DNA of 32,000 nt, from positions 420,001 through 452,000 of the forward strand of contig NW_008806276.1 of NCBI RefSeq assembly GCF_000400465.1, written 5' to 3'. The notes beneath the pieces are model-generated. The model saw only the letters and a list, made by a program, of their open reading frames with translations, was not told the DNA's origin and ran no database searches. Made by a program: the position numbers and the translations under genes. This DNA is from Wallemia ichthyophaga EXF-994 (taxonomy: Eukaryota; Fungi; Basidiomycota). Shown piece by piece: positions 5,426-30,907 of this stretch (positions are counted from its first letter, which is position 1; each line of letters begins with the position of its first letter).

Positions 5426-5464
5426 TTCACGTTTTTATGTCTTGGTCGTTCTTGTTCAAGGACC

Positions 5465-7152
5465 ATGACGTCGAAGCGCCAGAGATCTTCTCCACCGGGC
5501 AGATTGCATAACAAGAAATCACGCGTGGCTGTGGCTGTGTCAGATGACACCGACGACGCCGAAGACGCTGACTACTCAGCCCCCTTGCGCCATCTCCAGC
5601 GATCTCTTCTCGCTACTTTCTACGGCTGGCACGCGCAGCCTGGCGATGGCGACGACGGCAGTGAGACGGCTGGTACGATCAGCGACCTGACCGGTGTGTT
5701 ACGTGGGAGTGTAGAGCACGGCGAAGGCAACAGCGTTCTTGTCGTTGGTGGCCGAGGAACCGGCAAGACGTTAGCAGTGCGCAGTGCACTCGCAGCTGTC
5801 CCCACCCGCCGCTTTATTCCCATCCACCTCCACGGCAGTGTCCACACGACCGATAAGATGGCTCTGCGCGAGATGGCGCGGCAGATACGCGCGCAGGGCG
5901 GCACCGTAACCTCGCTCGATGCGCTCCAGTTGCAGGTGGACGAGAACGGGGAGGGCGGAGAGAGCACAGAGCACCCAGAACACACTATCGATATCGGCCA
6001 GAGCACCCTTACCGCTTTGCTCACCCTTCTCGCCGCTTCCGCTCTCCCTATAGTCGTCGTGCTCGATGAATTCGATCTCTTCGCGGCACACGCTAGGCAG
6101 GCTCTGCTTTACTGCCTCCTCGACTGCGCTCAGGGTGGTCGCCGCAGAGGTGGCCTAGCTGTCGTCGGCACGACGTGTAGATTCGTGGGTTGTCTCACCT
6201 TTTCTTTTAGTTTCTTGCTCATTGATTTTTGCGTTGCTCACTCAGGACGCCGTTGATATGCTCGAGAAGAGGGTCAAAAGTCGTTTCTCGCAGCGAATCC
6301 TACACGTATCGAGTCCGCGTACGTGGACAGCGTGGTGCACTCTCGCCCGAAAATCCCTATCTTACCCGCACGTCGAGGATGTAGCCCACGCGAAGCAGTT
6401 GGACAAGTTCAAGACACAGTGGGATGCACACGTAGAGCGACTTTTCGACGATACGCAGTTCGAGCTCGTGCTCAAGATGCTTTTTGACATGCTAGCCGAT
6501 ATCCCAGCGCTGTACCGAGTGTTTGTAGGTGAATGCGGAGAGCGTTTAACGAAATAACTAACAAACACACACCCCATACACTCCAGGCTATACCCATCGC
6601 TAATGCTACACCGGAGAAGGCATTTCCACCTGCGAAAGAATTCCTTGGCGCATACGCTTCGCAGCGTCCCACAGATACATTCTACCTACTCGACACACTC
6701 CCTTTGCCGGCAATCGCGCTCGTGATTGCCGCGAAACAGATCAGCGCACGCGATATGCACACATTTACATTTGAGTTGGTCAATAAGGAATACGACGACT
6801 GGGCGAGAAGGACTATATACGCACCGACAGCCGCCAGTGTGGATATGAACGCGATGACCAACCCTCGCATAGCAATCAGTGTTTGGCCGCGACATATACT
6901 GATGGGGGTGAGTGGTGTTTAGGTACTTTTTTCTGACTGACTTGCTCATACATCACTCTACAGGCATTCGACACACTCGTCCTCCTCAACCTCTTCATCC
7001 CCGTCTCTTCTGCTAGCGCTCTCGCAAGCGGGGAAATGCGCGAGTATGCCACCCACAGATGCGCGCTCGAGAACGGGGAGATAAGACAAGCTGTGGAGAA
7101 ACGGAGGGATCTGCCGACGTCGCTGTATAAATGGGGCCATAGTTGGAATTGA
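5465..7152 (+). CDS. ORC4: Origin recognition complex subunit 4 (AAA+), 3 introns
   Basis: Walker A GGRGTGKT, Walker B plus the ORC4 motif VVLDEFDLFAAHARQALLY, and TCRF|DAVDMLEKRVKSRFSQR across intron 6185-6245. The C-terminal winged-helix exon ends ..LPTSLYKWGHSWN* at 7152. Confidence 0.93.
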
Positions 7153-7299
7153 AGCGTGTATTACTGTAACATAATTTATTTATTTCCTTTTCCGTACAAG
7201 GATTAAACGGGTTAGCGTGTTAGTCTTGTCGCGTCATAACGTAGATTGCCTCTGGGAGCAACGACCACGACGAAGAAATAAGAATTAAAGATAAATAAA

Positions 7300-8355
7300 A
7301 TGCTTGGCACGCGACAGACGTTTAGAGTAGCGATGGGGGACGGAGATGGAGATGGCAGCAGCGCTGGAGTGAACAAGTCATTCAAGACGCCTGCCAAAGG
7401 TGGTGGGCGAGGGGGCAAGGAGAATGCGATAGCGATGAGCATGAGCATGGGAAAGCCAGGTAGTACAAACCCGCTCAAAACACCACTGCCATCGAAAAAG
7501 CCGCAGCTATTCGGTGAAGTACCCACCACGGTTAAATCCAAGAAGACAATGACCGGTCTGACTCCGGCCCCACCCAAGACTGTACTGAGGCCTGCAGCTG
7601 GACAGAATGTGCAAAATGTGCACAAGGGGCAGAGTGGTCAAAAGAATAAGGATAAGGATCCCAGTCCTCGTCCGTCGACTCTGCGCAAGTCAATGCGCGT
7701 GCCTACACACCAAACACAGGCGCAGAACATCAAGGCGACACCGGCACCCACTTTCATTCCCCTCCACCACCACGAAGACGATGTCGGCCCCACTCTTGGC
7801 GAAATGAAGCAGGAGGAGAAGGAGCAGGCGATGCTGGAGTTGGAGCTGGAAGAGGAGGCATATCATGAATCTGATTGGAGTGATTTCGAAGTGGAGTATG
7901 CACCCGGTAAGGAGACTCAGATTGAGTTGCCATCGAGACCACTCGAGAGTGAAAGTGAGTCGGAGGTTACAAATTACAGGGAATTGGGCCGTCAGTTGAG
8001 AATAGCTTCACCAAGATTCAGCGTTTACGAGTCGGATGACAGTGATGGTTCGTACGCGTCGGATCAAATCGCAGACTTGAAAACACGCGGTGGATTCGGT
8101 GAGGAGGTGAAGATGGACTATGACAGTGGCAGTGAGGAGGATATCGGGATTAGAGTGAAGAAGAAGCAGAAAGGAGTTGTGGGGAGGGGAGGTACAGTGG
8201 CTAATACTCGCGTTACAACCCAGAGAAGACCGGTCAAGAAACAGGCACAGACACAGCCACCGAAGCACACGCAGACCCACACCCACACACGCAAGATCAA
8301 ATTGGATGATATCCGAGTGGAATTGGATCTAGAGAGTTGTTTGTTGGACTTGTAA
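7300..8355 (+). CDS. Low-complexity protein, candidate securin-like (Pds1/Cut2-type) APC/C substrate; single exon
   Basis: 351-aa ORF with a basic, disordered N-half carrying a KEN box (GKENA), a D-box-like RVAMGD and several TP sites. The acidic C-half contains DFEVEYAP, which resembles the E/D-I-E-Y-x-P separase-binding motif of fungal securins. The ORF is well supported; the family call is inference. Confidence 0.45.
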   Translation: MLGTRQTFRVAMGDGDGDGSSAGVNKSFKTPAKGGGRGGKENAIAMSMSMGKPGSTNPLKTPLPSKKPQLFGEVPTTVKSKKTMTGLTPAPPKTVLRPAAGQNVQNVHKGQSGQKNKDKDPSPRPSTLRKSMRVPTHQTQAQNIKATPAPTFIPLHHHEDDVGPTLGEMKQEEKEQAMLELELEEEAYHESDWSDFEVEYAPGKETQIELPSRPLESESESEVTNYRELGRQLRIASPRFSVYESDDSDGSYASDQIADLKTRGGFGEEVKMDYDSGSEEDIGIRVKKKQKGVVGRGGTVANTRVTTQRRPVKKQAQTQPPKHTQTHTHTRKIKLDDIRVELDLESCLLDL

Positions 8356-8392
8356 GCGTTATGAATAATCATTAGCCATTGTCAGTGTCGTC

Positions 8393-8825
8393 ATGGCTCA
8401 AGTAGAAGTGGATGTGAGTATACTGGGTATAGTTTATAGACAGGTGTGTATGTATGTGTATGTATTCTCTTTTAAATAGCTTAACACCGCTATAGCTCCT
8501 AGTCGACGTGGCTACAAGCCTGAAGAATCCAGAGGACAGAGAGACCGCGGATATTCTAAAAAGGCGTCTGTTATCATTTGAAGCGATGGCAGAGAGTTTG
8601 GATACGCGTATACGCCGTTGTAGGGATGTAATAGCGCGGGATTTGAAGAAGCCAGAGATACAGCCAGAAGAGACACAAGAGATACAGCCACAGCAACCAC
8701 AGCAACCACAGCAACCACAGCAACCACCACAACCACCACAACCACCACCAAACGATCCACTCACTCTCGACACGCTCCTCGATAAGGATGACTTTGACTT
8801 ATTCGGGGACGGATATCTTCAATAA
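8393..8825 (+). CDS. Small hypothetical protein: amphipathic helices, Q/P repeat and acidic-hydrophobic tail; 1 intron
   Basis: ATG at 8393. A donor at 8414 (GTGAGT) or 8444 (GTGTGT) splices in frame to the TAG acceptor at 8495 (CTTAAC branch-like site), giving LLVDVATSLKN..LDKDDFDLFGDGYLQ*. Confidence 0.65.
8685..8750 (+). repeat. Coding 9-bp tandem repeat (CAACCACAG/CAACCACCA) encoding QPQ/QPP
   Basis: About 7 consecutive units are directly visible. Confidence 0.9.
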
Positions 8826-8920
8826 GGCGTGGACGGATACCTCTCCGATGAGCCAAATAAGCTGTAAATAGAAATACAAGATTATTATACAAGGCATAAA
8901 AAGAAATTCAAAGTCATAGC

Positions 8921-9608
8921 CTAATTCCTGGTGTTCGTGTGAGGGCTATGGATCCATTGAGCCAAGTCGACGTTGTTGAGCTTGTTGTACGCGTTTGACT
9001 TGTGCTTATCTGGTTTAGCTGGCGAAGGGGAAGTAGCTAGGAAGAGCATCAGCTGAGCATCTGCTTCGTCTGGATGTTGAGTATTTGTGGGTGTTGAAGT
9101 GTGTGTGGGCGTCGCAGTTGCCGTGGGCGTGGAATTCGCCGTAGATAAATGCCTGAGAGACTGTCCCCTGTTATAGCCCGGTGAATGGAATAGACTTGTT
9201 AAAGCACTTGCCGCGTTCATTGATTCGCTGTCGTGGGACGTGGCCGTTGACACGGGTAGACCGGGTGACGCGTTATTACAGCTAATTCTACGCGTATTTA
9301 CACTCCTCTTAGGTGACTTGGGTGATTTAAAGGTATTTGAAGCGTTTACACCGTTTGGCGATCTCAATGAATTCGGCGGTGGCATTTGACTGGTGCTGAG
9401 TATAGAATCCACAGGCGTATTCACCAGTCCATTACGAGCTTTGTAAGACGCCAGCTTGAGTCTTGTTTGCAGCTGCCTTGAAGCCTGGAACAGCGTGGAT
9501 TAGACAGTGTGTTGCGTGCTGTGCCATCGACAAAGCTACACGCACCTTGCTCACGTGTACCCTATTCAATATCGCGTTCACAGATTTATTACGCGTGTCG
9601 TTCGTCAT
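8921..9608 (-). CDS. Whi5-like domain protein (Whi5/Nrm1 family G1/S transcriptional repressor candidate); 1 intron
   Basis: Splicing 9485-9545 (GTGCGT..CTAAT..CAG) gives ..HVSK|ASRQLQTRLKLASYKARNGLVNTPVDSI, which matches the Whi5-like motif L(R/K)TRL.YA..K...GW. The SP/TP-rich tail includes KSPKSPKR and AQLMLFLATSPSP. The supplied ORF track splits this gene into two ORFs. Confidence 0.7.
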
Positions 9609-9659
9609 CGATCCCTTCACGATGGTTGCTGTAAACGTCGATTATCTACAGATCAGTCG

Positions 9660-10946
9660 ATGAGAATTTACAACTTGAATTTGGATGTTTTCGGTGGCAT
9701 TGGCGCGTACCTGGATGCCCGCGATATCCTCAACCTGAGATTCACCTGCAGATTCCTACGCGGTGTGGCTGACCATGTTCTTATACCGAATAAGCTCAAT
9801 GATCTCCAGAGAAAGGTCTTGTACAATACGAGCATCTCTCCAATTCAGAAACTGCGTCAAATCCCACTTACAGACGACAACTGGAGCACTTGCACCTTCC
9901 ACCCCACCCAACTCGTACACACCCACTCTAGCATCCCCGTTCTTAACACACACAACCACCTTCTCATCCTCGCCAGTCGTTCTGCAGTCTTTGTCTGGGA
10001 TAGATGCTATTCCCCGTGGCGGTACACACGCTTCGTAATTTTCAACCACTCCTCTGCTAGCATGGATATTACTGGCTTGGTTGTCGTCGAGTGTGTGGGC
10101 GATTCTGTCTCTCTCATCGCCTCCCACTTCTCTGGCCTCGTTCAGCGCGTTATTCTCAACTTGCACTCCAAAAAATCTTCTCAAACGGCCATATACTGCG
10201 GTAGTAGCCGTACTAGCAGTGCTATAAGTAGTTCTATTAGAACACCTAACCTCACTTCTCTCACAGGCACATCCAATGTCGTCATAAGCGCTGCTCAAAT
10301 GGGTCAACTACGCCTTCTCTCCCCAAACGCCCCTTGGATTGAACATCCTCCGATAAACGTAGAGACCAATAGACTTTGGGGTGTCGATTACAATTCCTAC
10401 AATGGCTCGCTGTCCGCCTCTCACAACTACACCCCTTCCACTCTCTCCGCTGTTTCTCTCTTTCACCTCCGCGAGAGCAATATCCAATCCACCGGCTCGC
10501 TCAAAACACCCCCACACATCTCCTCCTTCACAGCTACGAACGGTTCATCTACAAACGGTGTTCTGGCATCGCCCGACATCATCATAGCTGGTTTCTATGA
10601 CTCGGGGGTTCGCGTGTACGATTGCAGGTGCGGATATGCACCAGTTAAACAGTATCAAGACGCGCTCGATCCACAGCCCGTTTACTCAGTCGATGTCGGT
10701 GGAGCGTATGACTCCCTCATCTGCGCTGGCTCTGCTCTCTATTCGCGCCTACGGATTATTGACGCTCGCATGCACTCGGATCGCGCCCATCATGTGTATG
10801 CCGCCGAAAGCGGCGATAGGTCCTCACCCGTCTACCAGCTACAAACGGATCACTCACACTGCTTCCTCGCAACTGAGTCTAATGTCTACGACTTGGACTT
10901 TAGCTCCGCTTCTCCTAATCACCGCTTCCCAACTGTTACAGTGTGA
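9660..10946 (+). CDS. F-box protein with C-terminal WD40-like beta-propeller; single exon
   Basis: From ATG 9660 the N-terminus reads as an F-box (LNLDVFGGIGAYLDARDILNLRFTCRFLRGVA). WD-like blades follow (IIAGFYDSGVRVYDCR, ICAGSALYSRLRIIDAR, SSPVYQL). Confidence 0.75.
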   Translation: MRIYNLNLDVFGGIGAYLDARDILNLRFTCRFLRGVADHVLIPNKLNDLQRKVLYNTSISPIQKLRQIPLTDDNWSTCTFHPTQLVHTHSSIPVLNTHNHLLILASRSAVFVWDRCYSPWRYTRFVIFNHSSASMDITGLVVVECVGDSVSLIASHFSGLVQRVILNLHSKKSSQTAIYCGSSRTSSAISSSIRTPNLTSLTGTSNVVISAAQMGQLRLLSPNAPWIEHPPINVETNRLWGVDYNSYNGSLSASHNYTPSTLSAVSLFHLRESNIQSTGSLKTPPHISSFTATNGSSTNGVLASPDIIIAGFYDSGVRVYDCRCGYAPVKQYQDALDPQPVYSVDVGGAYDSLICAGSALYSRLRIIDARMHSDRAHHVYAAESGDRSSPVYQLQTDHSHCFLATESNVYDLDFSSASPNHRFPTVTV

Positions 10947-11013
10947 ATTAAAGGTTATGCTATTTATGCAAGGCTGAGGCTGAGACTATTTATCGTCGTC
11001 TTGTCAAATCAAT

Positions 11014-12635
11014 TCACATCAGGTAATCGTTTAGTCTCCTCAACGACACCCGTGAGGGGTTCGTCGTTGGGTAGGCATTGATCAGCCACTGAAGCCGCGT
11101 ATTGATTGTCGCTTTCGTTATCTCTACTGGCTGGTTAGTGGGTGTATTGCAGTGGTGTGTTTTTCTACTCACCCCCCGCTTTACACTGGCGCTCCCCGTT
11201 CTCGTCGAAAAATAGCGTCGCAGCAGCCACGCACACGGCCGAAGCGAGATCAGTACCACCGCTAGCATCGCTGACAGCTATACGGCGGCCATTATCAAGC
11301 TGCTGCCTCACAAACAACATGACATGGGGAAGTTGTCCCAAAAACTGTTTCTGCGCCTGCTTGGATGATCTGGGGAGCTGGACATGGAGAGTGTGAGTGG
11401 AGCGCGGCGGAGGCTGTGGTGTAAGAGCGACGAGAGCGATATCCGATGGCAACGATGAAGCCGCATCGCACTCAGCAGGGAAGATAGCACCTGCGAGAAA
11501 GGCGCGCGTGTCGTTACTGTCTCCTACACGGACGCTGTGGGTGGATGTGGAAGTGCTGCGCGCGAGATGCTCAGCTGCAACGGCAGCCACTCGCTCGTCG
11601 AGCAATTCTCTCGGACAGTTGAGAAGCTCATGGCGATTTGCCCAGAAACACTCCGGTGTCAAACCGCCCGACCACAGCTCATGATCGTCGCCGCTGCCCT
11701 GCACATACTCACCCCACTCAAGGCTCTCTGTCTCGTCGGGAACGTAACGCGATGCCGAGACACAGATGAGCGGGTAGAAGTCGAGAGTGGCCTTGTTGAA
11801 ATCGGGTAGTTGCTCAGTCGCAGGATGAACGAATATCGGCCGTATGGGCTTGTCGAGGTGGTGAGTGAGCTGTAAAGCTGAGTCTCGTAGATTGTTAGTC
11901 CATGTGCGTAGCTGGTCGCGGATGCACTGCTGCTCTGAATCGCTTACAGCCTGCGCGGGCGTGTGCAGAAGCGTTTCGGGTGGCGTACCTAGCATCGCCG
12001 CACTCACTACCGCACACCAAATGGGGATCGTCTTGGATATAGCATCCGGGTACCGCTGCTGGCGTTGTCATGTAAAGTGATGGAGATAAAATTTTAACCC
12101 ACCTTGCCCCTGCGCGTTGAATCAACAATGACGAGTCTGTTGAGAGAGAAAGTGAGTTGGGTGTTAAATCCTGCCACAACACATACCCCCCGCTAGCCAC
12201 TATATGATTCACGAGATGCAAATTGGGACGCCTGAGGGAGAAGGACCATGCGTGGGTGTGTCCGTCCGTGGACTTGAAGTAGGCGTATATGTCAGCTCTG
12301 TAGGAGTCCTGAGAAAGCACGTGTGTGTGAGCGTATGAAAGTATCAGCTGCGACTGCGATTACCACAGCACTAACCATGCTCGGATCCATGTACCACACT
12401 CCGCAACGCTGATTGGCTGGCTGGGGTGAGCCGATGGCGTGCGTGATGCCGTACACACCCACCAATGGCAGGATACGCTTTATATGTTGCTGTGACCATG
12501 CGCACGAACTGTGCATCGCTGTACTCAGCGTCAGCGGTGGAGCAGCCCAATGCACCCGAAACTCAACTGGAAAATAGAGTGCAGCCTGTTGTAACACGTA
12601 TTTTGATATTTGATCAATTCTCGCCCGGAAATCAT
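11014..12635 (-). CDS. RIT1: Initiator tRNA A64 2'-O-ribosylphosphate transferase, 6 introns
   Basis: Spliced motifs YNRLHSI, ANQRCGVWY, AYFKSTDGHTHAWSFSLRRPNLHL, IVDSTRRGK|RYPDAISKTIPIWCAV and the C-terminal NPSRVSLRRLNDYLM*. The start could alternatively be the in-frame ATG at 12665. Confidence 0.9.
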
Positions 12636-12663
12636 GAAAATTTCTTGGTATTTTGCAATCAAC

Positions 12664-15546
12664 ATGTCGAGCTGGCAGCCACAGCCTGAGGGATTAGAGC
12701 AATTGCTCAGTCTGCTGAGAGACTCGCTCAGTCCAAATACGCAAGTGCAGCAAGCCGTTACGCAGGTGAGAGGGATTGGTGGTTGGTCGATAGACGCACG
12801 CTCACTCACCCATCACGCCAGCGACTGGAAACATTCAACGCTATCCCAGACTACAACAGCTACCTCGCTCACGTACTCATCAAACAGCCCCAACAAGAAG
12901 AACGCGTTAGATCAGTTGCTGGTCTCATTCTCAAGAACAACATCAAATTTGGGTGGAAATCTTGGCCAGGCGACAGCCAGGAATACGTTAAATCTATCCT
13001 CGTCGATGGTATCAGTGATCCCGCTGTCATGGTCAGGTCTACCACTGGTACGGCTATCGTGGCAATCCTCGAAGAATGCGGCCCTGAGAACTGGCCTTTA
13101 GCCCTCTCACGCTTAATGGCGTCCATTGACTCATCCAGTATCCAAGAGCAGGAGGGTGCTTTCAGCACGCTGGCCAAAGTTTGCGAGGATATGTACAAAA
13201 AGCTTGACTGCGAAATAGCTGGTGTGAGACCACTTGACTTTATGATTCCGAAATTCATCCAGATGCTCAATCATCAGTCGGCTAAAGTTAGGATACACGC
13301 TTTGTCGTGTTTGAACAGTTTCATACCGACCCAGTCAGCTAGCTTTCTCGCCAGTATCGATCACTTCATTGCTGCCCTCTTCCAAAGAGCGTCTGACGGT
13401 GTGCCCGAAGTTAGGCAGCATGTTTGCTCGGCACTCGTTCGCTTGCTTGCGTCTCGCCCAGACAAACTCACCCCTGAGATGAACAATGTCGCCACTTTTA
13501 TGCTCTACTCGACTCAGGACAAGAATGAGGAAGTTGCACTCGAGGCTTGCGAGTTCTGGCTCACTTTTGCTGAAGAAAATCACCTTATTGATCATCTTAG
13601 ACCTCTGCTCGACAGAGTCGCACCAGTTTTGCTCAACACTATGGTGTATTCTGATACGGAACTTGTCATTCTTCAGGCAGACGAAGACGACGACGATGCC
13701 GCTGTTCCTGACAAAGACTCGGACATTAAACCTCACATCTACGGGGGCAAAACACACACGCAATCGTCTGAAAATGACAATCAGCATCAGAAAATGGGCA
13801 GAGATGCAGAGATTCCATCAGATGAAGAAGATGAAGAAGACTTTGATGAACTTGACGATGATGAACTCACATCGGAATGGACTTTGAGAAAGTGCTCAGC
13901 AGCTGCCTTAGATATCCTTTCAATCAACTTTCCAGTAGAACTGCTTAACATCCTGCTTCCATATTTGAAAGAAAGGCTCTTTTCTCAGGATTGGCTACAG
14001 AAGGAGTCAGCTATTCTTGCACTCGGTGCTATAGCAGAAGGATGTATCGAAGGCATACAACCACACCTCCCACAACTCGTCCCATACTTGGTTAACTCAC
14101 TTAATGACTCAAAGCCTCTGATCCGCTCTATCTCGTGTTGGGCTCTGGCTCGCTATTCTAGCTGGTCAGTACAACCCATCTCTGTTGAACACAGAAACAA
14201 CTATTTCGTGCCAACGATGGAGGGATTGTTGAGAATGGTCCATGACAAAAACAAGCGTGTACAGGAAGCTGGTTGCTCCGCTTTCGCTACTCTCGAAGAA
14301 GAGGCAGGTAAGGAGTTGGAGCCGTTCCTCAAACCTATTATAGAACACCTAGTTTATGCATTTCAAAAGTATCAGAGGAAGAATTTACTCATACTTTATG
14401 ATGCGATTGGTACACTTGCAGATGCGGTGACAAGCGCACTCGATAATGAAGAATACGTGACGTTGTTGATGCAACCACTTATTGATAAATGGCAAAATCT
14501 AGCCGATGATGATGAAGACATTATTCCTCTCTTCGAGGTGAGTTTTTGGTGTTATTAACTGACGCCTTTGTTAAGACCCTCTTCAGTGCTTATCTTCATT
14601 AACTGTGGCCGCTGGTTCTAGTTTCATTAAATTCGCTCAGCCGGTTTACGAGAGATGCTCACGGATAGTGCATGGAAATCTCATGCAATTTCAAACAGCC
14701 GTAGAACAAAATGACGAAGACAATATACCTGATAGAACATTTATTATAGTCGCATTGGATTTAATTTCAGGTATGATTCAAGGATTGGGTAGTAATGCTC
14801 AGGAGTTGATAATAGCCAATCAATCCACATCATCAACACCATCATTACTTAATCTATTATTATTCTGTTTGAAGCATCCAGACAGTGCTGTTAAACAATC
14901 AGCATATGCTTTAGTTGGAGATTTGGCGGTTAGTTGCTTCCCAATACTAATTCCAGTCCTTGGTACACTACTTCCTGATCTTATTCAACAAATTGAGATT
15001 GCACCAACGACGGATGCTATTTCAGTTTGTAATAATGCTGCATGGGCAGCAGGAGAGATAGCGACATCGTACACCAACTACCCAGACCTCAACAAGGATG
15101 ATTTTATCAAGTATGTTCCATCGTTGACTGAAAGATTGGTACCAATACTATTACATCCAAAGTCTGTCAAGTCTTTAGCGGAAAATGCGGCTGTTACAAT
15201 TGGTAGAATTGGATTGGTTTGTCCAGAGATTGTAGCTCCACATTTGCAAGTATTTGCAGCGCAATGGTGTGAGTCATTGTGGGAGATAAAAGATAATGAA
15301 GAGAAAGATAGTGCGTTTCGAGGATTTTGTAAGCTAGTTCAACTCAATCCATCAGGATTAGCGACTAGCTTCCAATTCTTCTGTAATGCAGTAGTAAGAT
15401 GGACATCACCATCGGCCGTGTTGAATGAGCAATTTAACGCACTACTCCATTCATTCAAGGCTGCTGCAGGTGTTAGTTGGGACGCACAAATGACAGCTTT
15501 GCCTCAACCTATCTCGACGAGACTGAGGGAGCGTTACGGTTTGTAG
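12664..15546 (+). CDS. KAP104: Transportin-1 / karyopherin beta-2, 2 introns
   Basis: MSSWQPQPEGLEQL, RSVAGLILKNNIK, VALEACEFW, the acidic H8 loop, WTLRKCSAAALD and ENAAVTIGRIGLVCP. Introns are at 12766-12821 and from about 14538 (GTGAGT..CAG). Confidence 0.95.
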
Positions 15547-17681: not shown

Positions 17682-18598
17682 CTAGTTTTTGGAGTTGTAT
17701 CTCACTTTCCTGCCCATATCAAAGGGGATGTAACGGTACTTTATCATGTGTCTGTGGAGGTGCTGTGAGTAAATGTTTGTACTGCCAAACTCGTCACCCA
17801 CTCAATCTGTCTCCTCATGGTGAGAGAAAAGAGGATAAAGAAGTAAAGAAGGAGGATTGGCCAGTATACAGGGATATCAGTTGCTTGGGTAGTGGTGCAG
17901 AGAAGTGATACTACTATGGCGCGTGTGGCAGAGTACCTGGAAGAGTATTTAGAAATGTCTCAGAGCCGACTAACGCGAAACTAACCAAAATTTGAACTCA
18001 GGAAGACGACGTATGAAAGGTCTGAACTCCTCGTCTTGATCCATAACACCACCTGCGCCAAGACCGTAACCACCGCCGCCGCCGTACGAGTTTGAATGAG
18101 AATCCTCAGCTCCGCCTTCGATATTGTCCATCTGCTCATCTTCTTCGATAGAAGGATCGAATTTGGGTGTGAGGAAGGCTAAGAAAAGGTTGAGCCTGTG
18201 GATGAGTGTCAGTGTCAGAATGTGTCAGAGTGTGTCAATGTAGCTTACAAGTACTGACAAGGTGTAAGTGGGTGTAAGCTATAGAAAATAAACTCACGAT
18301 GAATAAAGCGCTATAAGAAACACCAAGTCAGCCATTAACACGAATCAAAAGACATCAACTAACTAGCAAATGATGTACCATCCGTGCGTTAATAGGATTC
18401 TAGAGCAGAACAAGAATATAATAATTCCAGTTGCAATCCATCTGTGTACAGTGAAAGGGGTGATGATATCCAGATTCCGTTGTATCTGCATTTGTATCTG
18501 ATGTAAATTTACATCGAATTGCTTTTTAAATGTGGATTCTAAGGCTATTTTAGATATGATTTTATTTGTTCAAATATCTCACCTTGAGTTTGATCCAT
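17682..18598 (-). CDS. RER1: ER retrieval receptor Rer1, 6 introns including two micro-exons; not listed in the supplied ORF track
   Basis: Spliced translation gives TPFTVHRW..GWYIICYALFIYLLNLFLAFLTPKFDPS..EEFRPFIRRLPEFKFW..DIPVYWPILLLYFFILFSLTMRRQI|.HMIKYRYIPFDMGRK, with the stop at 17682-17684. Confidence 0.93.
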
Positions 18599-18642
18599 CG
18601 TGCTGGCTGTCACTGACCAAAGAAGACCAATAAGCCGCGTAA

Positions 18643-19199
18643 ATGGATTGGAGTATATTAAAACCTCCATTATCTGTGACACCTACAACGCGTAGAAGAG
18701 GCGTTGCTTTATCACGAGCCAAGGCCAATTTCGCTGCGATTGCTGTGTGGTATGTGATTAGCTGTAGTGAATATTATTATCTATTTATGCTATGGATGAG
18801 GAGTGGTAGAGGTGAATGGGTTGCTGGTGTTTGTAGGTGTATCGTATGGCTTATATAAACCCAACTAAACTTAATCAAGTAACTCTTATTCCCTTCATAC
18901 TAACTTTCAACCTCCTGCAAGCTTTAAGTGTTTTGTTCGACAAGCCAGCTACTAAAACTGAGCCAGCTAAATTATCTCAAGAACAGAAGCACTCTCTCAC
19001 TCCCCGTAAGAACACCAAAATAGATAACTTCAATGGCGATATCCCGTTGACTCCTGGTGATTCTTACAAGCCCAATTTAAATAACAGTTTAAATAGCAGC
19101 TTCAATAGCGCCACTTTCAATCGCAGTACCACAAACTCAAACACTCTAGATACTCCTCAAAAACTCTATCAGCAGCGACATAGAAATGTTAATTTATAA
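18643..19199 (+). CDS. Small two-TM membrane protein with S/T/N/P-rich tail; candidate Pom34-like nuclear pore membrane protein; 1 intron
   Basis: ATG at 18643. A 47-nt GTAGGT..CAAG intron joins two ORFs, giving two hydrophobic segments, then LSQEQKHSL (similar to the LT/SPxQRxLL motif of the Pom34 family) and IPLTP. The family call is tentative. Confidence 0.5.
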
Positions 19200-20360: not shown

Positions 20361-23300
20361 ATGGTAGCAACACGTAGAGCAGGTCGTATATCTGCATCTG
20401 CTCAGGACTCTTCCACAACTCAACAAGGTGACACGGAGCAGCCTGAACACCAAGAGCATCTTGAATCTTCCACTCCATCTCAATTAGAACATCAGCGCGT
20501 CATCGACCAACTTGAGCACTACAAAGTTCTCTTAGAGACTGAGAAATCTGCCTCGTTGCGGCACAATATTGACACTGAGCAGTCACTTAGCGAACAAGAG
20601 AGTAAGATTAATGAGTTAGAAACTCAATTAAAGCAGAGTATCGACAGTCACAATGATATTATGAAGGAACGCGATCTGTCTCGTGAGTTGTAGTCATTAT
20701 GACTCTTGTGGCTTTTACAGCTCACAAAGCTGACGTGCTTTACAGGCGAGCAAGTTATTAAACTTAAAATCCAACAATCATCTCAAAACACCGCTGACTC
20801 ACCGGAAACTCTCCAAAAGATTAAAGAGTTGGAAGAGTTGAACGCTAAAAGCGCAGAAGAGAAGAGCGATCTTATCAAGTTTGTTGAGAGACTCTCTTCC
20901 GATATTGAAAGACTGGGTGAAGAAGTTGACAGTCTACGTACACGTCTCACTGAATCTCGTGAGGAGAATTCAAAGTTGAACAAGGATCTTCAAGATGTTA
21001 AGTCGTTTGAGACTACAAACAAGGTGTGTAGAGCGCGTCATCAACCACATTATCTCACAAGATACAGTACAAGATTCAATCACTTGAACAGGAGAATCAA
21101 CTTCTCAAGAGTAATGAGAATTGGCTCAACTCTGAACTTAACAAAAAGGCGGAGGAGTTTAGTATATACCGTCGTGAAAAGCATACAGAGTTGACTGAAT
21201 CCCAATCTCAGCTCGATGTTTTGCAATCCCAGCTCAACTCACAAACCACACAATTATCAGCCCTTCAATCCACTTACGACAATCAAGCCAAGAAGCTTTC
21301 CGATGTTCTTGCTAAGTCGGCCCAACTCGAGACCTCTTTGGCTACCACACACGAGGAATACAAAGCTGAAATCAACACCCAAAAGCGAGTTGTAGAGTTA
21401 CTCGAGTCACGTGAAAGTGAATCTAGAAAACGAGTCGAGGAGGTAAACAAAGAGTTCGATGTCCTTGTAGCCAAGTCTGAGTCTGAGACTTTGTCACATA
21501 ACGAGGAGCTGGCCAGGGAGCGTCATAGGAATTTAGAGTTAGATACTGAGTTGAATGAGTTACGAGCTCATGGATTTAACACAGCTCTTAACACGGGCAA
21601 CGGTACACCAATCCCGTCAACACCACAAACTGGACAATTTGACACTTCATTCGCACTCTCACCAACAGCTTCGATTGCCTCAAAATTCAACAAAGGTAGT
21701 AAATCATTTACTGAAATTTACTCCGACTATGCCAAACTCGAGAATGAGTTTAACCGCGAAAGAGCTGAGAGACGAAGACTGGAGAGTTGTTTAGCGGATG
21801 TAGTCAGTGAGATTGAAGAGCGTGCTCCAATCCTTCAAGAACAACGTAAAGAGTATGAAAGAAGAAACAATGAAGCAAATGGTCTTGCCACCCAACTTGC
21901 AGAATCTATGGAAGAGAGAGATGCACTTAAGGCTACAGAAATGGAAGCTAGATTGGTGGCTGAAAACGCACAACGCGAATCAGAATTACAATCACAATCT
22001 CTTGTCGATTTATCCAGACAAGTGTCCTACCTCACAAGACAAATTGCAGCTATTGAAGATCCATCACTGCCCACAGACGCCGAACAGGTCGCTCCTGCCT
22101 CCGAGCATCAGTTGGCTGTCGACCAGGCTATTTCAGACAGACTCGTTCTGTTCGCTTCGACTGAAGAGCTCGTAAAGCAGAACCAAAACCTCTTGAGAGT
22201 GTCGAGAGAACTCGGACATAAACTCGAGCAAGCCGATTCAGCACATGAAGCTAAAGTTAAGGAGAATGAAAATGAGTCACTGCAAGAGGCTTATGAATTA
22301 ATTCAGCAGCTCAAGGATGAAATGGAATCTAGTCGTGAGAAAGCCGGTAGCTATGTCCGAGAGAGAGACATGTTCAGAAGATTACTAGCTCAGTCGGGTA
22401 AGAACGTTACAAATATTGGTCAAGAGGATGTTGGCAGTGAGAATCTCAGTCAATCACAACAAAAAACTCCAGATTATGCCGCTCTCATGGCAGATCTCCA
22501 AGCCAACTTTGATGCATACAGGACTGAGATGGGTTTAGATACCAAGTCACTGAGAGACGCACTTGCTGCTGCACAACGTGAGACTAGTAGTTTGAAAGTT
22601 CAGTTAGCACAATCCAACGCTCAGAATAATTTCCTCAACGAGCGCCACGAGATGACAATTGAGAATCATAACATGTCCAAGATGGAGATCTCTCATCTTA
22701 GCGCCAACAACCAGAAACTACAGTCTAGTTTAATTCACGAGCAAATTAATATAAATAGAGTACAGGAGGAGCTGATTGGATTGAAGGGTACGCTCGATAG
22801 AACAGCAAACGAAAATAGTCAATTAAGGACTGAAAAGGAAGTGCATAAGGGTATAGAAAGTAGATTACTGGCTGATAATGAGTCACTGTCACGCGACAGA
22901 GTGCACCTGAATGACTTGATGAGGAACCTTCAATCAATGCAGTCAGAGTTGGAGAGGTCCTCGAGAGATAGCAGGAGCAGATACGACACGCAGATCGCCA
23001 ATCTCGAAGAAAACATCAAAACGCTTAAAGAGGATCTCACACATGAGTCTGATCAACACAAGCAACTGTCGCTCAGAAGAGAGATTGAGTCTAAGGAGTA
23101 TCAAAATAGGATTGATAAACTCACGAATGAGCTGCACACGTCCAAAGAGAATGTCGTGGAGTATCGAACCACCCGCGACCACCTCCATGTGCGCGTTGAA
23201 GATCTCACTCAACAGCTCAAGAATAAGGAGGAGCGTCTGGCGGTTTTTGAGAATAGGAATGGTGACTCTACAGATCTATCAACTGAACAACAATTGCAAA

Positions 23301-26259
23301 TTGAGATTGCTGAGTTGAGGTGGGTTGATTTATTCGCTATCTTCGTTTCTCGTTTCGCTCACAGAATTTAAAACAGATCCGAACTCGAAACTACAAAAGC
23401 TGAGGTCGGTAAATCAAATACACACATTGAGCAATTCAAGCAGATTGCGCAGGCGAATGAGAATGCTCTCCAGGAAATGAATGAGTCATACGACAGCTAC
23501 AAGATATCTCAAGATAAATTATTGTCAGAAAAAGAGGCTATGATTCGTCAATTGGAAAACAGAATGGAGGGATTAACAGCGCAAATTGAGCAAGTGCAGG
23601 GCGAAAATGATGAGTTGCACCAGAAGCTCACTAGTGAAAGATCTGAATACGCACACGAGAAGAAGACATTGGAGGATCTGCTCGCGGATCTCAACAACGC
23701 ACAGGGAGAACAAGAGTCTAGATTCTCCAAGCTGCGCGATGATCGCGACAAACAGACAACCACAGCAAATGAGAACCACGAGAAATACCAACGCGAGGTT
23801 TTATTACACGCACAAACGGTCAATCAGTTGCAGGACACCAAGAAGCAGATCACCAATCATCTCACACAAGCCAAGGAAGCTAAAGAGGGTAGACAAACGG
23901 CTGAGGAAGCATTGAAGCAAGGCGAAGCTAGCTGGGAGTCACAGAAATCGTTGCTAAGTGTGGAGCAAAGCGAGTTGCGCAAGCGCTACGATGAGATAGT
24001 CGGGCAGAACGAAGTCTTGCACAAGCACTTAGAAAGTGTGAACAAGAAGGTATCGGAGGCGTCGAGTGCAACAGCCACAACAGGTGACGCGCAAGTGAAT
24101 GTGAATGTATCCGAGGGTGAGTCATCCGGAGACTTACAATCGGTGATCAATTACCTCCGCAATGAGCGCGAATACATCGATTTACAACTCTCACTCGCCA
24201 AGCAGGAGAACACTCGATTTAAGACTCAGCTTGAGCGTCTTAATGAGAGCTTGGATGAGACGAGAGCATTGCTGACTGAGGAACGCAACAAGAATGCCCG
24301 CGGTGATGTTTCAGCTGTCCAGCACCAGGAATTGCTCAGCAAGATCGATCAACTTAATTTACTCAGAGAAAGCAACTCCACACTTCGATTTGAGAGTCAT
24401 AGAAATAGGAATAAGGTGCTCGAATTAGAAACTGCTTTGCAAGCATCCCAGAATGTGATTCAGCCGATCGAAGAAACAATTCGTAATCTACAAGCTGAGC
24501 TTTCTGTGTCGAAGAAAGAGGTTGAGCATTGGAAAGAAGATGCGGAGAGATGGCAGAAGCGTAACCAGCAGATTCTGTCCAAGTATGAGCGCATCGATCC
24601 TGCCGAGTTGCAAAAATACAAAGATGATGCGGAGAAGTTGACAACCAGTCTCGACCAAGTTAAAAAGGAGTTGGAAGAAAGCAATACTAAGGTGGGTATT
24701 TTGACTTTGAGCAATTTTAAACTGACAGATTACAGGTTCACAAGTTGGAGGAAGACCTTGCCAAGGCCAAAGAACAACACTCAGATGTCGTACGGAGGTC
24801 GAATGAAAACACTAAAAAGCAAAAAGCTACGACGGACCGTCTCAAAGGCCAAATTAACGACTTAAACAATCAGATGAATGGTGCCAATGAGAAGAATGCC
24901 CAATTCGACAAAATTACTGAGGAGCTCAACAAACTCAAGACTGAATATGGAACTATCGAAGTTTCTAAAAAAGAGCTTGAGAAGAAGTTGGAGGAGACCG
25001 ACAAGAGTACTGCAGATTCTGCAATGCATGTTGATGACGGTGTCGAGAAGGCAAATCTCGAAAAGGAGCTGACTGAAGTTCGTACCAAGGCCACTGAGGG
25101 CGAAAAGTTGGTTGAGGCATTAAAACTGCAAATTGCCACTAAAGAAGAGGAGATTGCAAAGGTTAGAAGCGAGTCGAGCGAGGTAGCTGCAAGTACTTCT
25201 GCTGCTGCGGTGCCAGCAGAGAATGTTGAAAGTGCTGTCGAGACAACTGTTGTTCAATCTACAGACGCCCATGCAGCAAGCGGTGAAGTCCAGCAACTGA
25301 AGCAAAAGTTGGGCGCTGTTGAGAGTGAGCTTGCCGATCACAAGGCCAAGGTATTGTCTTTGCAAGTGACTATCAAAGAAAAAGAAGGGCAAATTAAGAA
25401 GCAGGTAGAACAAATTAAAAGACTTGAAATGAATAGCAAAGTCAAAGATAGATCTTTGGCTGGAATGAGGGAGCAAGTGGAAAAAGAAAGGCAGAAAAAT
25501 ACTGGTCAGCCTGTCCAAAAAGAAGCACCAAAAGCACCAAAGCAGCCACAAAAAAAGAATCAGAATGAAAAACAGCCTGAGCAGACTGAACATCAGTCGG
25601 AGAAGCAGAATGAGAAAGTGGCGGTCTACGACAGTAAAGGTGTTGATGCTAATGGTAGCGCGGATGCACAACGAGTTACCCAAACACCGCAGCCAGCACA
25701 GCCAGCTCCAGCCTCTCAACCTGCTCAAGCAAATCCAGCAACTCCAGCAGCTCAAACTAGTCAGCCAGTACAAGCTACGCCGACGCCTGCTCCTGCAGTG
25801 ACACCTGAGCATCAGCAAGCACCAGCTGAGAACATAGGTGAGATTTTTTTATATAAAAAGATTATTCTAACGGCACCTTAGAGTATCAAGACAATCAAGA
25901 CAAAGGCAAGCAGGAGCCAAGCAATGAAAATCAAGACACGGCACAGACTACAAAATCTGCACCTTCTGGACCTAGTCAGATCAGCATAGCAGGAGCAGCT
26001 GGTAAGAAGGCTCCAATCAAAAAGCTAGAGAGGCATACCCCTGGCGATGGGTCGAGTGAGTACGACTAGATATCACCAGCTAACCTAACAAACCGCCTCA
26101 GGGAAAGCAAAAGTAGGACTGTCAGGCCTGGCCGGGAAAATCTTGCCTACGCAGGGTGGCAGCGGTGCGACACCCCAAAAAAGACAGAGAGATGAAGAGA
26201 CTGCGGAGAAGTCTATAAAAGGCAGCGCCAAAAAAAGTAAAGAGAACGACAAAGAGTAG
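20361..26259 (+). CDS. MLP1: Nuclear basket coiled-coil nucleoporin Mlp1/TPR, 6 introns
   Basis: Long coiled coil with TPR/Mlp signatures (LSPTASIAS..FTEIYSDY, EIEERAPILQEQRKEYER, LVLFASTEELVKQNQNLL, ERDMFRRLL, VINYLRNERE, LNLLRESNSTLR, RNQQILSKYERIDP). Canonical introns link the ORF pieces to the stop at 26257-26259. Confidence 0.92.
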
Positions 26260-26728
26260 GAAAGTGTGATAAGAGAATCGTGTATTTATGTAAATGAATT
26301 ATGAATTATTTCTTTCTAATACAAGATGTCCCTAGCTTTGTTAAGTTTTACTCAGAGTGAATGGGGCTCTGCAACTAAAAAGAGCTAATGAAAGATATGC
26401 ATATATTTTGTGACGTGGTAAGATACATGCCAGAATGGTAGATAAAATGATGAATGTAAAATGCCCTGTAGAATGACATGAAATAAGTCGGGCGCGTTTA
26501 TAAGCTGGATAAGAGTTAATAAAAGATATGAAAGTGGTATAGATAGCGTGATTTGTTTCGTGTTTGATCTGAAGTCTTTTGAAAACAGTGAACCAATTAT
26601 CTAACCGTAAATGGGTGTATAGAAGTGTGTCAAATGAATATAAAACCCGATTTTTGAATAATGTGGAAGAGAATAAATAAAAATTGAAGTCCATTCCATG
26701 TTATGCTCTTGTCTTTGCCAGTTGCACT

Positions 26729-26788
26729 TGCCTATGCTCATGCTCATGCTCATGCTTATGCTTATGCCTATGTCTATGCCTATGCTTT
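26729..26788 (+). repeat. Degenerate hexanucleotide microsatellite (TGCYYA-like) x10 in the MLP1-DUF1765 gap
   Basis: TGCCTA TGCTCA x3 TGCTTA x2 TGCCTA TGTCTA TGCCTA TGCTTT is directly visible. Confidence 0.9.
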
Positions 26789-26924
26789 TCCAAAGTCATT
26801 TCCCTTGTCGTTTCACGTAATCATTTAAATCATGTAATAATCTATTCACGTTATCATATCGTTAATTTTGTACTGCTTTGAAGTCCAAATGCCGTCAAAA
26901 TAGTGCACCTACATTGACAGCGCG

Positions 26925-29900
26925 TCAATCAAACGTAAAAGCAGCGGGCCATTGCACGGTTAATCTCGGTACCAACTTGGACTGCCAGTCCTGGTACTGA
27001 TATTCGACGTTGAGGATGTTGATATACTCGTTAAGGGCCTTTGAAGCGTATGTGTGGAGAGATGGATCGTAGGCGAGACTATCTGTGGGAGAAAGCGCCG
27101 TTTGCGTGTTGAATGTGTTGCCTGTGTTGATTAGCAGCTTGGCTGCTGGTTCAGGGAGGAAAGCAGTGTGTATTGCTGCGGCAGTTCTTGTAGTCTCCTC
27201 TTCTGCACTTGATCCACAGTTCGTTTCTACCCTGTTAGCCGAGTGCTCACTATCAACCTTCTCGCCCTTCTCATACTTTTCAACTTCCTCACACTTTTCA
27301 CCACTCTGCGGCGACGAGCTGGGTGATGAGGATGACGACGTAGGTGACTGCAATTCAAAGCTGAAGGTTTTTTTGGGTGTGCGAGGGGGAGTAGTAGGTT
27401 GGTTAAGTTGTTCATGTAACTGAGGTGAATGTACTGATGTCGATGCACCATCAAACTCTAATCCTAGTCCTGTCGCTGCTGAAGGGGTACGTATAGTTGT
27501 TGGTGGGGTATTACCTCCTTTTCCACCACCGTTACCAATCTCACTTTCACTCCCATTCTCGCGCGTGTCACTCGACGACTCAATTATAGAGTTACGCTTA
27601 TTCTCCTGCTTGAACTCATTCTCCGAATCGTGCTCGCGTTCGTGCTCAGCCTCACTCACCCCATCCGGCTCAAGCTGCTCATGTCGTCGATGAATTTTGT
27701 TGAGGAGGGTGTTAAGAGTGAGGAGGATGGAGAGTGTGAGCGAGTGAGATTGTGAGAGTGTGTTAGAATGTGAGCAGTCCTTATCTTTATCCTCATCATT
27801 GTCCTTATTATTGTTCTTGTTACTGCTACGATCCACCTCATTTCTGCCGTTGTGATTGAGTGCGGTATCATCAAACCTCTTCACATTTTCATCCTCCCTT
27901 ACACTCCCACCTCCAAACGCGTCGTCGCGCTCTGTCGCACCCTGAACGTGTCCAATTCTGAACACAAGCAGACGGAGCCAGTACGACCTTACACTCTGCG
28001 ACCAGAAGAGTGTGAGGCGTGTGAAAAGCGCCTGGTCGAGGAGGATATCGATGCACAGTGCGCGCCTTGTCTCGAGTGTGCAGCACAGCGAGTCGAAGTG
28101 GGTGAATATGAATGATCTGCCATGTGTCAGCGAGTTTTGTTACGAGTAACGAGGTGAGAAAGGGAGTGTGATGCACTAATGCACAAATGCAATAGCACAC
28201 TCCGTACTCCTCTTTACACTCACATGGTTCGTATCAGCGTCAGGACGTGATCGCACTGCTTAAGGATGATAGCGAGGAAATGGAGGATGAAAGGTAAATC
28301 GAGTTTGTCAACACTGCGCTGCTCGTAAACTCCCGCAATAATCCCATCAAGTGCATCCAATAGACAGAACACCTGGGGTGCGCTATAAAGGTTAGTAGAG
28401 TGTACAGCGACCATAAGGTGATAATCTACAACATTCACATAACCAGCCTGGATCAAATCTTGCATCGTACTAACTACTCTCCGATTAGCCTGGTCTAGCA
28501 GCTTCGGTTTGCCACTGGTAGGTGCGAGGACATTGGCAGTTTCCGCCACTTCATTAGACCCTCCTTTTAGACTATTGGTGGTGCCTGTGGTGACGCTGTA
28601 TATGTCGCCTTTGAGAAGAGAGAGCATTTTTGAATGAAGAACATAGCTTAGGTGGGCGTAACCAGGTAGGGAGAAGAGGGTGGGTGTGGATGTGGTGCAG
28701 TTACCAACACTCTCACAACCCTCACCATCTTTATCATGCCCACCCGACATAGGATGCATTAGTCGATGGTAGGCTCTCACGAAGCTGAAGAAAAGCTCCG
28801 AGTCGTCAGAAGTCCATCTACGTAGCCAGTTGTCGGGTTCGAGCGTAATGTATGAGGAAGAGGAAGTGCTGGGAGAGTAGCTGTGCAAGGCGTTGATGTA
28901 CGCCTTGGTCTCCTCGTGGCAGGCTATTTCGATAGCGCTCGTTTTGTGTGAAGTGGGAATGGGGGTAAGAGTGAGTGGTTTGAGATGGTCTGGGAAATTA
29001 GAGGCGAGACTGGCACCACACCACCCAGAATCCTTGACTAGCTTTGCTAGTATCCTGCTTGATACGTCTAGTGGCTGCAACAGCTGATATGCCACCCCAG
29101 GCACTCTGAAAAAGGCTATGGCAAAATATCTGCCGCAGTAGAAGATGGTGTTCTGGAATACACCGCGACTGTTAAGTTTTGAGAGAGAGTAGCGTATGAC
29201 GTCGGAGAGTACATTGCAGACGGTATGCTCATCGTGTGGGATATGAGCAGCGATGGAGAGAGGAGAGAGGAATTTGCTGTTTGGGGGGTTAGAGGGGGTG
29301 GGGATGGAGTATACAACAAACCTCTCTAAAATAACTGCCAATGAATCAAGGCATGCGCTGCGTTCAGGAGCGACTTGGTGAGTGTTGAGGTCGTCAATAA
29401 GAGCGTAGACCCAGTCGAAGAGGAGTTGACGTCTGTACTTAGTGTGGAGATTGTATTGGTTGCAAGTAGAGTAGACGCTGTCGATATTCTTAAAAGCGTT
29501 GAAGGTTTCGCGTATAAAGATGGCTTTGTTTGGGGAAAGGGAGGACTTGTTGGAGGTGAAGGAGGCGTAGTTGTGAGATAAGGAAGACCAGATTCTGGAG
29601 AGGTGTGGGGGTTCCTGGGGAGGATCTTGGGCGTGTTGGGTGTTTCGCATATTTTGGGTGTCTTGGATGTCTTGGATGTCTTGTGTGTCTTGTGTGCCCA
29701 GTGTGTCTTGACTATTGAGATTGTCTTGGTGTTTCTTTGAGAGCAAAATAGAATCACTGCTTACAGGAATTGGAGAGTAAGAGCGTCTAGAGTTGGCGAT
29801 GTTGTTTATAAGCTTGAATACGGGACTCGGAGGGTTTTCATGGGTGAAAGAGTGGTTCGGGGGGCTGTTGGAGAGACTACTCGATGGACTTGGTGGGGGA

Positions 29901-30235
29901 GGATCCGGGGTTGGATAGAAATAGATATTGCGCTGGGAGTCTGTGTACGACAGAGCTTTATCGATTTCGAATACCAAGTTATCACCAAAGTCCAAGTCGA
30001 TGGGGTGGAGAGTCGGGTGTGTGGGAGAGTGTTTGGGTGAATGTGGCTGTGAATATGCTTCTGCCTCTGCTTTTGCCTCCGCCTCCGCCTGATTACCTCT
30101 ACTTGCACGCCGGCTACGTCTAAATCGCCTTAAACGACGTCTAAAAGAGAGGAAAAAGCGGGAGAAGGAAGAATTTTTATTGTTTGGGCTGTCAGAGGTA
30201 GAAGAAGGACGACATAGGATGGATATAAAATGCAT
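26925..30235 (-). CDS. DUF1765 (UPF0592, yeast YDL073W/Ahk1-like) family protein, probably 2 introns
   Basis: Conserved blocks YCGRYFAIAFFRVPGVA, WLRRWTSDDSELFFSF, TNLYSAPQVFCLLD and, after intron 28117-28223, SFIFTHF..RRALCIDILL..LFWSQSVRSYWLRLLVFRI. The termini are low-complexity and the ATG at 30235 is uncertain. Confidence 0.75.
29654..29698 (-). repeat. Coding 9-bp tandem repeat (TQD/IQD units) in the DUF1765 N-terminal region
   Basis: Five TTG(G/T)(A/G)TG(T/C)C units are visible on the + strand. Confidence 0.85.
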
Positions 30236-30301
30236 TAGAGCATTTGAGTTGGTGGAAGTACAACAAGAACCAACAATAAGGAAACAAGGAAACAAGGTCA
30301 A

Positions 30302-30872
30302 TTACTCATTTATGAGGGCTACAATCAATTTGTATAAGTAGAAAAAGAAAGAAATCAAGTAGAAAGCAAGCTTGATAAAGCTCTCCTTCTTGTGGGTGGA
30401 AAGAGTTCTAAATATCTCTGTTGCGTCGTACGAGTAGTTTGAGTGATATACTTTACGGGCGTTGTGTATAGCTAGAGGTGTATTGATTAGGAGTGTAATC
30501 CACTGCCCAGATACCAAGAATAACGCCGTCAAAAAGCCATGGAATCCAATCTCTGGTTTAATGAATTTATTCAATTTGTTGCATAAGTCTATTGGGTTTA
30601 TATAATCGCACTCTAAATCACTGAACATGATTATCTGGATTTTTATTAGTATGAACTACTAGTGATTTACTAGTATCTATGGTTAGGATTTACTAGTGTT
30701 GATTGCTAGTAATTTACTAATAACCATGACTAGTAATACCTTAATCAAACTCACAAAGAATACCATGGTAAACAACAACCCAGCCGCTGCTAGCACACTA
30801 AACAAATATAACCAGGCTAATAATTCATTAGCTTCACCCTTGAAATATTCAACGCGCACCTTCTCCACCCAT
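30302..30872 (-). CDS. ERV14: Cornichon family ER cargo receptor Erv14, 2 introns
   Basis: MGGE|AWLYLFSVLAAAGLLFTMVFF|IIMFSDLECDYINPIDLCNKLN..DATEIFRTL..KLAFYLISFFFYLY. Confidence 0.95.
30635..30754 (-). repeat. ERV14 intron 2 (120 nt) containing degenerate repeats of GATTTACTAGT / the palindrome ACTAGT
   Basis: ACTAGT at 30658, 30669, 30692 and 30729, GCTAGT at 30705, and GATTTACTAGT twice. Confidence 0.75.
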
Positions 30873-30907
30873 TTCTGACGTTGACCGTTTATTCAAAACC
30901 CTTGAAA

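Follow-up and report, generated by a model that had tools for sequence, protein, structure and literature searches.

Head-to-head gene pairs in the window

The stretch of DNA analysed here (positions 420,001 to 452,000 of contig NW_008806276.1 of the salt-loving basidiomycete Wallemia ichthyophaga EXF-994; 32 kb in all, hereafter the window) carries five head-to-head gene pairs, DOA1/ORC4, Whi5/F-box, RIT1/KAP104, RER1 with a small membrane-protein gene, and ERV14/PTRHD1. An earlier note on the window, made from its letters alone, had called five CAT...ATG spacers of 39, 51, 28, 44 and 35 base pairs (bp) between their start codons, and a script check located every one of them where the note had placed it (Table 1). 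Structurally, the pairs belong to the head-to-head (bidirectional) class, as in all five the genes lie on opposite strands with verified start codons 28–51 bp apart. No further head-to-head pair was found in the window using the open reading frame list, Pfam scans and the deposited calls, and no structured RNAs or tRNAs were found in it. The gene names already proposed were consistent with Pfam except that of the RER1 partner, which had been labelled ‘Pom34-like’ and for which no Pom34 family match was obtained.

The W. ichthyophaga genome measures 9.6 Mb and holds 4884 genes, with coding sequence (CDS) making up 73.6% and an average of 2.41 introns per gene, and the gene models deposited for EXF-994 are ab initio GeneMark-ES predictions (PMC3849046). 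By arithmetic from Table 1 of PMC3849046, the mean CDS-to-CDS gap genome-wide is ~373 bp, and under an exponential model with this mean gap, five of five spacers of ≤51 bp have P ~3e-5. These are real head-to-head pairs in a genome stripped of most of its non-coding DNA; the coding density is that of compacted genomes, with head-to-head (5′5′) spacers of −2 to 84 bp and tail-to-tail (3′3′) spacers of 1–95 bp.

Spacer lengths in the window were compared by gene orientation. The 5′5′ spacers had a median of 39 bp, the seven head-to-tail (5′3′) gaps (147, 37, 240, 213, 75, 129 and 66 bp) a median of 129 bp, and the four 3′3′ gaps (95, 67, 67 and 16 bp) a median of 67 bp, the 5′5′ class being shorter than the 5′3′ class (P = 0.018). 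The rule reported in Theileria, and cited there for fungi, is 5′5′ > 5′3′ > 3′3′ (PMC4761415). In Wallemia, as in these genomes, the length of a spacer varies with the directions in which its two neighbours point, but in this small sample from the window the usual order is reversed, with 5′5′ (39) < 3′3′ (67) < 5′3′ (129). Neighbours on opposite strands may be able to share DNA and so be squeezed at their 5′ and 3′ ends alike, whereas same-strand neighbours would need a terminator before the next promoter and could not overlap as easily, which is likely why the head-to-tail spacers stay longer. At convergent junctions, the stop codons of PTRHD1 and the clathrin light chain gene lie 16 bp apart (31315-31330), and the F-box/RIT1 stop-to-stop gap is 1 bp in W. 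mellicola (L002 11266-11268) and 11 bp in W. hederae (L003 11284-11296). Judged from stops only 16, 11 and 1 bp apart, the 3′ ends of such convergent genes must also overlap the neighbour. Separately, about 1 kb at 25882-26924, between the convergent Mlp1/TPR-like and DUF1765 genes, holds no convincing gene and includes a hexamer microsatellite (26729-26787); the same junction is unusually wide in the syntenic loci L005 and L010.

Table 1. Window coordinates of the genes, spacers and candidate motif of the five pairs, with spacer lengths in other Wallemia species
Feature	Positions	Strand	Basis
DOA1/PLAA-type gene, first exon (WD40 propeller), start codon 5425-5423	4433..5425	-	Pfam WD40; alignment to yeast Doa1 3odt; methionine kept in 4 species
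Spacer 1, DOA1/ORC4, W. ichthyophaga 39 bp	5426..5464	.	Coordinates and syntenic loci (W. mellicola 25, W. hederae 21, Wallemia sp. 31 bp)
9-mer TTGGTCGTT, candidate promoter motif	5442..5450	+	3 exact copies in 146 kb; shuffle P = 0.002
ORC4	5465..7152	+	Deposited 502-amino-acid model with AAA_16 and ORC4_C; PDB ORC4 matches; N-terminus conserved
Whi5-family gene	8921..9608	-	PF08528 on deposited product; N-terminus conserved in 4 species
Spacer 2, Whi5/F-box, W. ichthyophaga 51 bp	9609..9659	.	Coordinates and syntenic loci (W. mellicola 37, W. hederae 41, Wallemia sp. 62 bp)
F-box protein gene, single exon	9660..10946	+	Identical protein on record named F-box domain-containing; weak F-box-like match, residues 16-39
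RIT1 (initiator tRNA phosphoribosyl transferase), start 12635, 5′ introns ~12519-12567 and ~12417-12462	11014..12635	-	Rit1 domains; exon 1 and 2 peptides conserved
Spacer 3, RIT1/KAP104, W. ichthyophaga 28 bp	12636..12663	.	Coordinates and syntenic loci (W. mellicola 38, W. hederae 46 bp)
KAP104/transportin gene	12664..15546	+	IBN_N, HEAT repeats; exon 1 91-94% identical in two species
RER1, first exon 16 coding nucleotides (18598-18583), intron 18582-18545	17744..18598	-	PF03248; tiny first exon conserved in 3 species
Spacer 4, RER1/partner, W. ichthyophaga 44 bp	18599..18642	.	Coordinates and syntenic loci (W. hederae 57 bp; W. mellicola start codons overlap, CATG)
Small membrane-protein gene (RER1 partner)	18643..19199	+	Exon 1 86% identical in W. 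hederae; orthologue read in W. mellicola
ERV14/cornichon, first exon 13 coding nucleotides (30872-30860), intron 30859-30817	30302..30872	-	Cornichon family; first exon common to 3 other species and deposited models P0042, P0045
Spacer 5, ERV14/PTRHD1, W. ichthyophaga 35 bp	30873..30907	.	Coordinates and syntenic loci (W. mellicola 84, W. hederae 26, Wallemia sp. 37 bp)
PTRHD1 (PTH2 family), exon 1 30908-30958, intron 30959-31002	30908..31314	+	Exon 1 fits conserved first strand of PTH2 family

Start codons and spacers across the genus

The start codons were checked by exon-by-exon tblastn and by direct reading of the syntenic loci of W. mellicola (L002, L009), W. hederae (L003, L010) and Wallemia sp. 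(L004, L005), with three more W. ichthyophaga assemblies (L006-L008) included in the comparison; 17 verified spacers (21–84 bp) of the four Wallemia species, with their 34 starts, are the basis of the cross-species spacer and start statistics given below. All ten starts called in the earlier note held against the other species. For DOA1, ORC4, Whi5, F-box and KAP104, the initiator methionine aligned in three to four Wallemia species and the N-termini were conserved as protein; residues 2-308 of the DOA1 query aligned to residues 7-306 of the yeast Doa1 3odt chain, so that residue 2 corresponds to yeast residue 7, and a comparable N-terminal offset was seen when ORC4 was aligned to ORC4 chains of known structure. 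The first-exon peptide of RIT1, read from the start at 12635, was 82–83% identical in W. mellicola and W. hederae, an ATG lay four codons upstream of the conserved peptide in all three species, and the second small exon was likewise conserved. RER1 opens with a first exon of only 16 (W. ichthyophaga), 19 (W. mellicola) or 10 (W. hederae) coding nucleotides (nt) followed by a short intron; the deposited 202-amino-acid (aa) model of W. mellicola uses this tiny exon, and the sole internal in-frame ATG of W. ichthyophaga RER1 (18491) is isoleucine in the other species. The 13-nt first exon of ERV14 is common to the three other species and is adopted in their deposited models, and exon 1 of PTRHD1 agrees with the first strand that fungal and animal PTH2-family proteins have in common. 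At position −3, 23 of the 34 starts carry a purine.

The earlier note had allowed that the true start codons might lie well downstream of those called, which would make the tight spacing an annotation artefact with real spacers of ordinary length. Such a reading can point to the deposited EXF-994 models, which place the starts of RIT1 and RER1 119 and 263 bp further in, and to three of the ten starts where the first exon is very short or otherwise unusual. Against this, the deposited RIT1 start (12516) opens a non-conserved frame, and the deposited RER1 start (18335) falls inside intron 2 and yields 146 aa compared with 202 aa in W. mellicola. All ten N-termini are moreover conserved from their first residues in two to four species with the ATG at the same place, the next in-frame ATG is far downstream or not conserved, and the N-termini of DOA1 and PTRHD1 fit distant homologues. 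By these comparisons the artefact reading is already largely refuted, and we regard it as scarcely credible.

Several irregularities of the gene models were also observed. CPA2 and DOA1 are fused to a 1900-aa product in the deposited annotation (window about 1-5425), and models from other strains join ORC4 to the gene that follows it (window 5465-8355), with products of ~870 aa. The PTRHD1 intron at 30959-31002, the only one that joins exon 1 in frame to the conserved exon 2, ends in CTG and not CAG, with no difference at this base among four independent W. ichthyophaga assemblies, and the intron has a normal AG in W. mellicola, W. hederae and Wallemia sp. This would represent either a non-canonical 3′ splice site or an impaired gene in W. 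ichthyophaga.

The comparison of orthologous spacers in related species, which the earlier note had proposed, indicated that shortness is kept throughout the genus and that spacer sequence is not. Across the four species, the start codons of the five pairs are −2 to 84 bp apart. At the lower extreme, the start codons of W. mellicola RER1 and its orthologous partner overlap in the palindrome CATG (L002 18544-18547). The pair 2 spacer is 41 bp in a W. hederae-like metagenome contig as well; in a more distant lineage (metagenome contigs L012 and L013) it is ~87 bp, a value not counted here, with six Whi5 codons visible. Spacers of orthologous pairs aligned no better than unrelated ones (0.68 vs 0.68, P = 0.42). 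Tight head-to-head spacing is common but not absolute, because the mitochondrial-carrier and eIF4E genes of W. hederae, the next divergent pair along that chromosome, are separated by 256 bp in which both upstream frames are interrupted by stops (L010 998-1253). No outgroup spacer was obtained from Mrakia frigida, where ERV14 and PTRHD1 are not neighbours and 4 kb separate ERV14 from the closest gene upstream.

Proposed promoter zone and transcription start

Two separate promoters with ordinary leaders cannot be accommodated between start codons at distances of −2 to 84 bp, and therefore very short leaders, overlapping 5′ ends or promoter DNA within the partner gene are the only options, much as the earlier note had reasoned. 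That note had gone on to propose a systematic minimal bidirectional promoter. The systematic layout was borne out, as all five window pairs show it and three further species have kept it; the idea of a minimal promoter contained in the spacer was not supported, since orthologous spacers are no more alike than unrelated ones, their lengths drift, they are TATA-less, and a zone of low G+C (GC) content continues into both coding regions.

Base composition and sequence constraint around the starts were then considered. The motif TATA(A/T)A occurs in no spacer and almost nowhere within the 100 nt upstream of the 34 starts, and CCAAT or its complement in only 2 of the 17 spacers, so that the spacers are not characterized by a CCAAT box. 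Spacer GC content ranges from 0.29 to 0.59. Mean GC content is 0.41–0.44 from about −100 to +75 around each ATG compared with 0.46–0.50 outside, which delimits a low-GC zone of ~175 bp covering the spacer and both 5′ coding ends. Between −1 and −125, the sense strand upstream of the starts has 0.73 ATGs per 100 nt; the figure is ~1.5 at greater distances and 1.31 for interior exons read on the antisense strand, and this depletion extends past the spacers into the coding region of the partner. Furthermore, among codons for identical amino acids, synonymous identity is 0.58 for codons 1-15 vs 0.37 for codons 16-30, with the same tendency in each of the five genes tested. The GC dip, the depletion of upstream ATGs and the synonymous conservation are suggestive only, but together they would be consistent with a promoter zone that lies over the 5′ coding ends.

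On balance we think it probable, if only just, that the genes of each pair share a TATA-less promoter zone of ordinary width lying over both 5′ coding ends, and that their mRNAs overlap at the 5′ ends. Such a zone would be ~150-200 bp wide, centred on the spacer, and would take in the first ~75-100 bp of each coding region or, in genes with a tiny first exon, part of the first intron. Because it would reach into both coding regions, the transcription machinery of each gene would assemble on the first codons of its partner. The transcription start site (TSS) of each gene would most likely lie at or beyond the ATG of the partner, and the two mRNAs would consequently be antisense to each other over tens of bases at their 5′ ends. 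In evolutionary terms, both coding regions may have encroached on a promoter zone of ordinary width during genome compaction. The strongest single argument for overlap is the W. mellicola RER1 pair: since its start codons overlap in CATG, any leader would have to overlap the coding sequence of the partner.

The main rival is back-to-back initiation within the spacer of 21-84 bp, with TSSs facing outward, very short leaders of a few to ~25 nt like those of microsporidia or Giardia, and mRNAs that do not overlap, the preinitiation complexes still resting on the first codons of the partner. Upstream ATGs speak for this arrangement: those at 5437 (ORC4) and 9622 (F-box), and those in the CATG palindromes of pairs 1 and 3, would be harmless only if the leaders were shorter than these distances. 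It also agrees with the ordinary scanning context provided by the frequent purine at −3, and leaders of Encephalitozoon cuniculi in its intracellular stage are among the shortest known (PMC3629993). The overlapping start codons in W. mellicola, however, leave no room for a leader without overlap, the depletion of upstream ATGs goes beyond the spacers, and no conserved initiator-like sequence was found beside the ATGs. First exons with only 10-19 coding nt, as in RER1 and ERV14, probably need some leader for splicing, and short leaders would make the whole first exon very short. We therefore hold non-overlapping short leaders to be possible but doubtful. Of the CATG palindromes, those of pair 3 comprise both start codons (12633-12666), and each of its two genes has an in-frame ATG 30 nt upstream, on the start codon of the partner, with no stop between.

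A different proposal is a dedicated minimal bidirectional core promoter, in which a short spacer element with a TTGGT core, TTGGTCGTT, fires both ways. The earlier note had pointed to TTGGT(C/A) in three of the five window spacers; the motif is present there, and TTGGTM falls four times within the 197 nt of window spacers compared with 37 copies in the 32 kb, but as a 5-6-mer across the 17 spacers it is not significant (P 0.07-0.22). The longer 9-mer TTGGTCGTT recurs in the pair 2 spacer of W. hederae and the pair 5 spacer of W. mellicola. These three exact copies are the only ones in 146 kb, and all stand in non-orthologous divergent spacers of different species (shuffle P = 0.002). Its 7-mer core occurs at chance frequency overall (18 vs 16 expected), yet 4 of the 18 copies are in divergent spacers; one copy sits 32 nt upstream of the ATG at 7300, which belongs to a single-exon gene behind a head-to-tail spacer. 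At this place, 7260-7268, the 9-mer is matched with one mismatch and in the opposite orientation. Against a promoter of this kind, the 9-mer is found in 3 and the TTGGT 5-mer in 7 of the 17 spacers, the element is not kept at orthologous positions and varies in orientation and distance, it is not a CCAAT box, and all the motif tests were post hoc. No k-mer is common to most of the 17 spacers, the best 5-mer reaching 7, and no conserved initiator-like element was found beside the ATGs. TTGGTCGTT, identified post hoc and carried by a minority of the spacers, is accordingly listed as a candidate element, and we consider a dedicated core promoter built on it very unlikely. The broader proposition, that Wallemia has a distinct and very small bidirectional core promoter, with a TTGGTCGTT-related element in a 20-80 bp spacer, divergent initiation, very short or overlapping leaders and 5′5′ spacers kept shortest by selection, seems to us unlikely; if true, it would be a geometry of RNA polymerase II promoters not described for free-living fungi.

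Several points weigh against the shared zone with overlapping 5′ ends that we favour. The sample is one 32-kb region with its syntenic copies, and the 34 starts fall into five orthologous groups and are not independent. Low GC content, few upstream ATGs and synonymous conservation also mark 5′ coding ends in general, and the values above were all taken from divergent genes. Upstream ATGs inside spacers 1 and 2 (5437-5439 and 9622-9624) open short frames over the ORC4 and F-box starts, and several others lie just beyond the spacer on the partner’s start codon, in CATG palindromes; ATGs so placed in and near the spacers would be unwelcome in long leaders. Exact-protein look-ups and searches with ERV14 and PTRHD1 returned only genomic contigs, with no RNA-derived contig and no spliced W. 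ichthyophaga product among them.

Relation to known compact and bidirectional systems

The Wallemia layout is a new instance of genome-compaction architecture. In the paper library searched, no work on TSSs, untranslated regions (UTRs) or bidirectional promoters in Wallemia was found. In this free-living, culturable and intron-rich fungus, divergent start codons stand as close together as in reduced parasites. Problems usually limited to microsporidia or nucleomorphs can therefore be tested in an organism whose transcription and splicing machinery is ordinary, among them how ~40 bp can serve two initiation complexes, whether 5′ ends overlap and in what way coding sequence also acts as promoter. 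In practical terms, ab initio annotation of compact genomes misplaces starts and fuses neighbours, as in three models here, and tiny first exons are easily missed.

Among known systems, transcripts of microsporidia such as E. cuniculi and Antonospora locustae are reported to begin within upstream genes or to terminate within downstream ones, and their leaders can be very short (PMC3629993). Like them, Wallemia is very densely packed with genes, and its spacers cannot hold separate promoters and UTRs, but it is a free-living basidiomycete with many introns and no reduced parasite, its overlap is predicted from gene layout, and the squeeze is strongest at head-to-head junctions. The near-leaderless, initiator-driven mRNAs of Giardia, Entamoeba and Trichomonas would likewise permit start codons a few bases from the TSS; in Wallemia, unlike in these protists, no conserved A/T-rich initiator was found beside the ATGs, and the tiny coding first exons argue for some leader. 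The bidirectional promoters of yeast, plants and mammals also join opposite-strand genes with 5′ ends less than 1 kb apart, and there one nucleosome-free and often TATA-less region is shared, of which the common GC dip of ~175 bp is the sole hint in Wallemia. In such classical bidirectional promoters, the TSSs are at least 100 bp apart, with the leaders in addition, whereas in Wallemia the start codons themselves lie −2 to 84 bp apart, and therefore any region shared in the same manner must include coding sequence.

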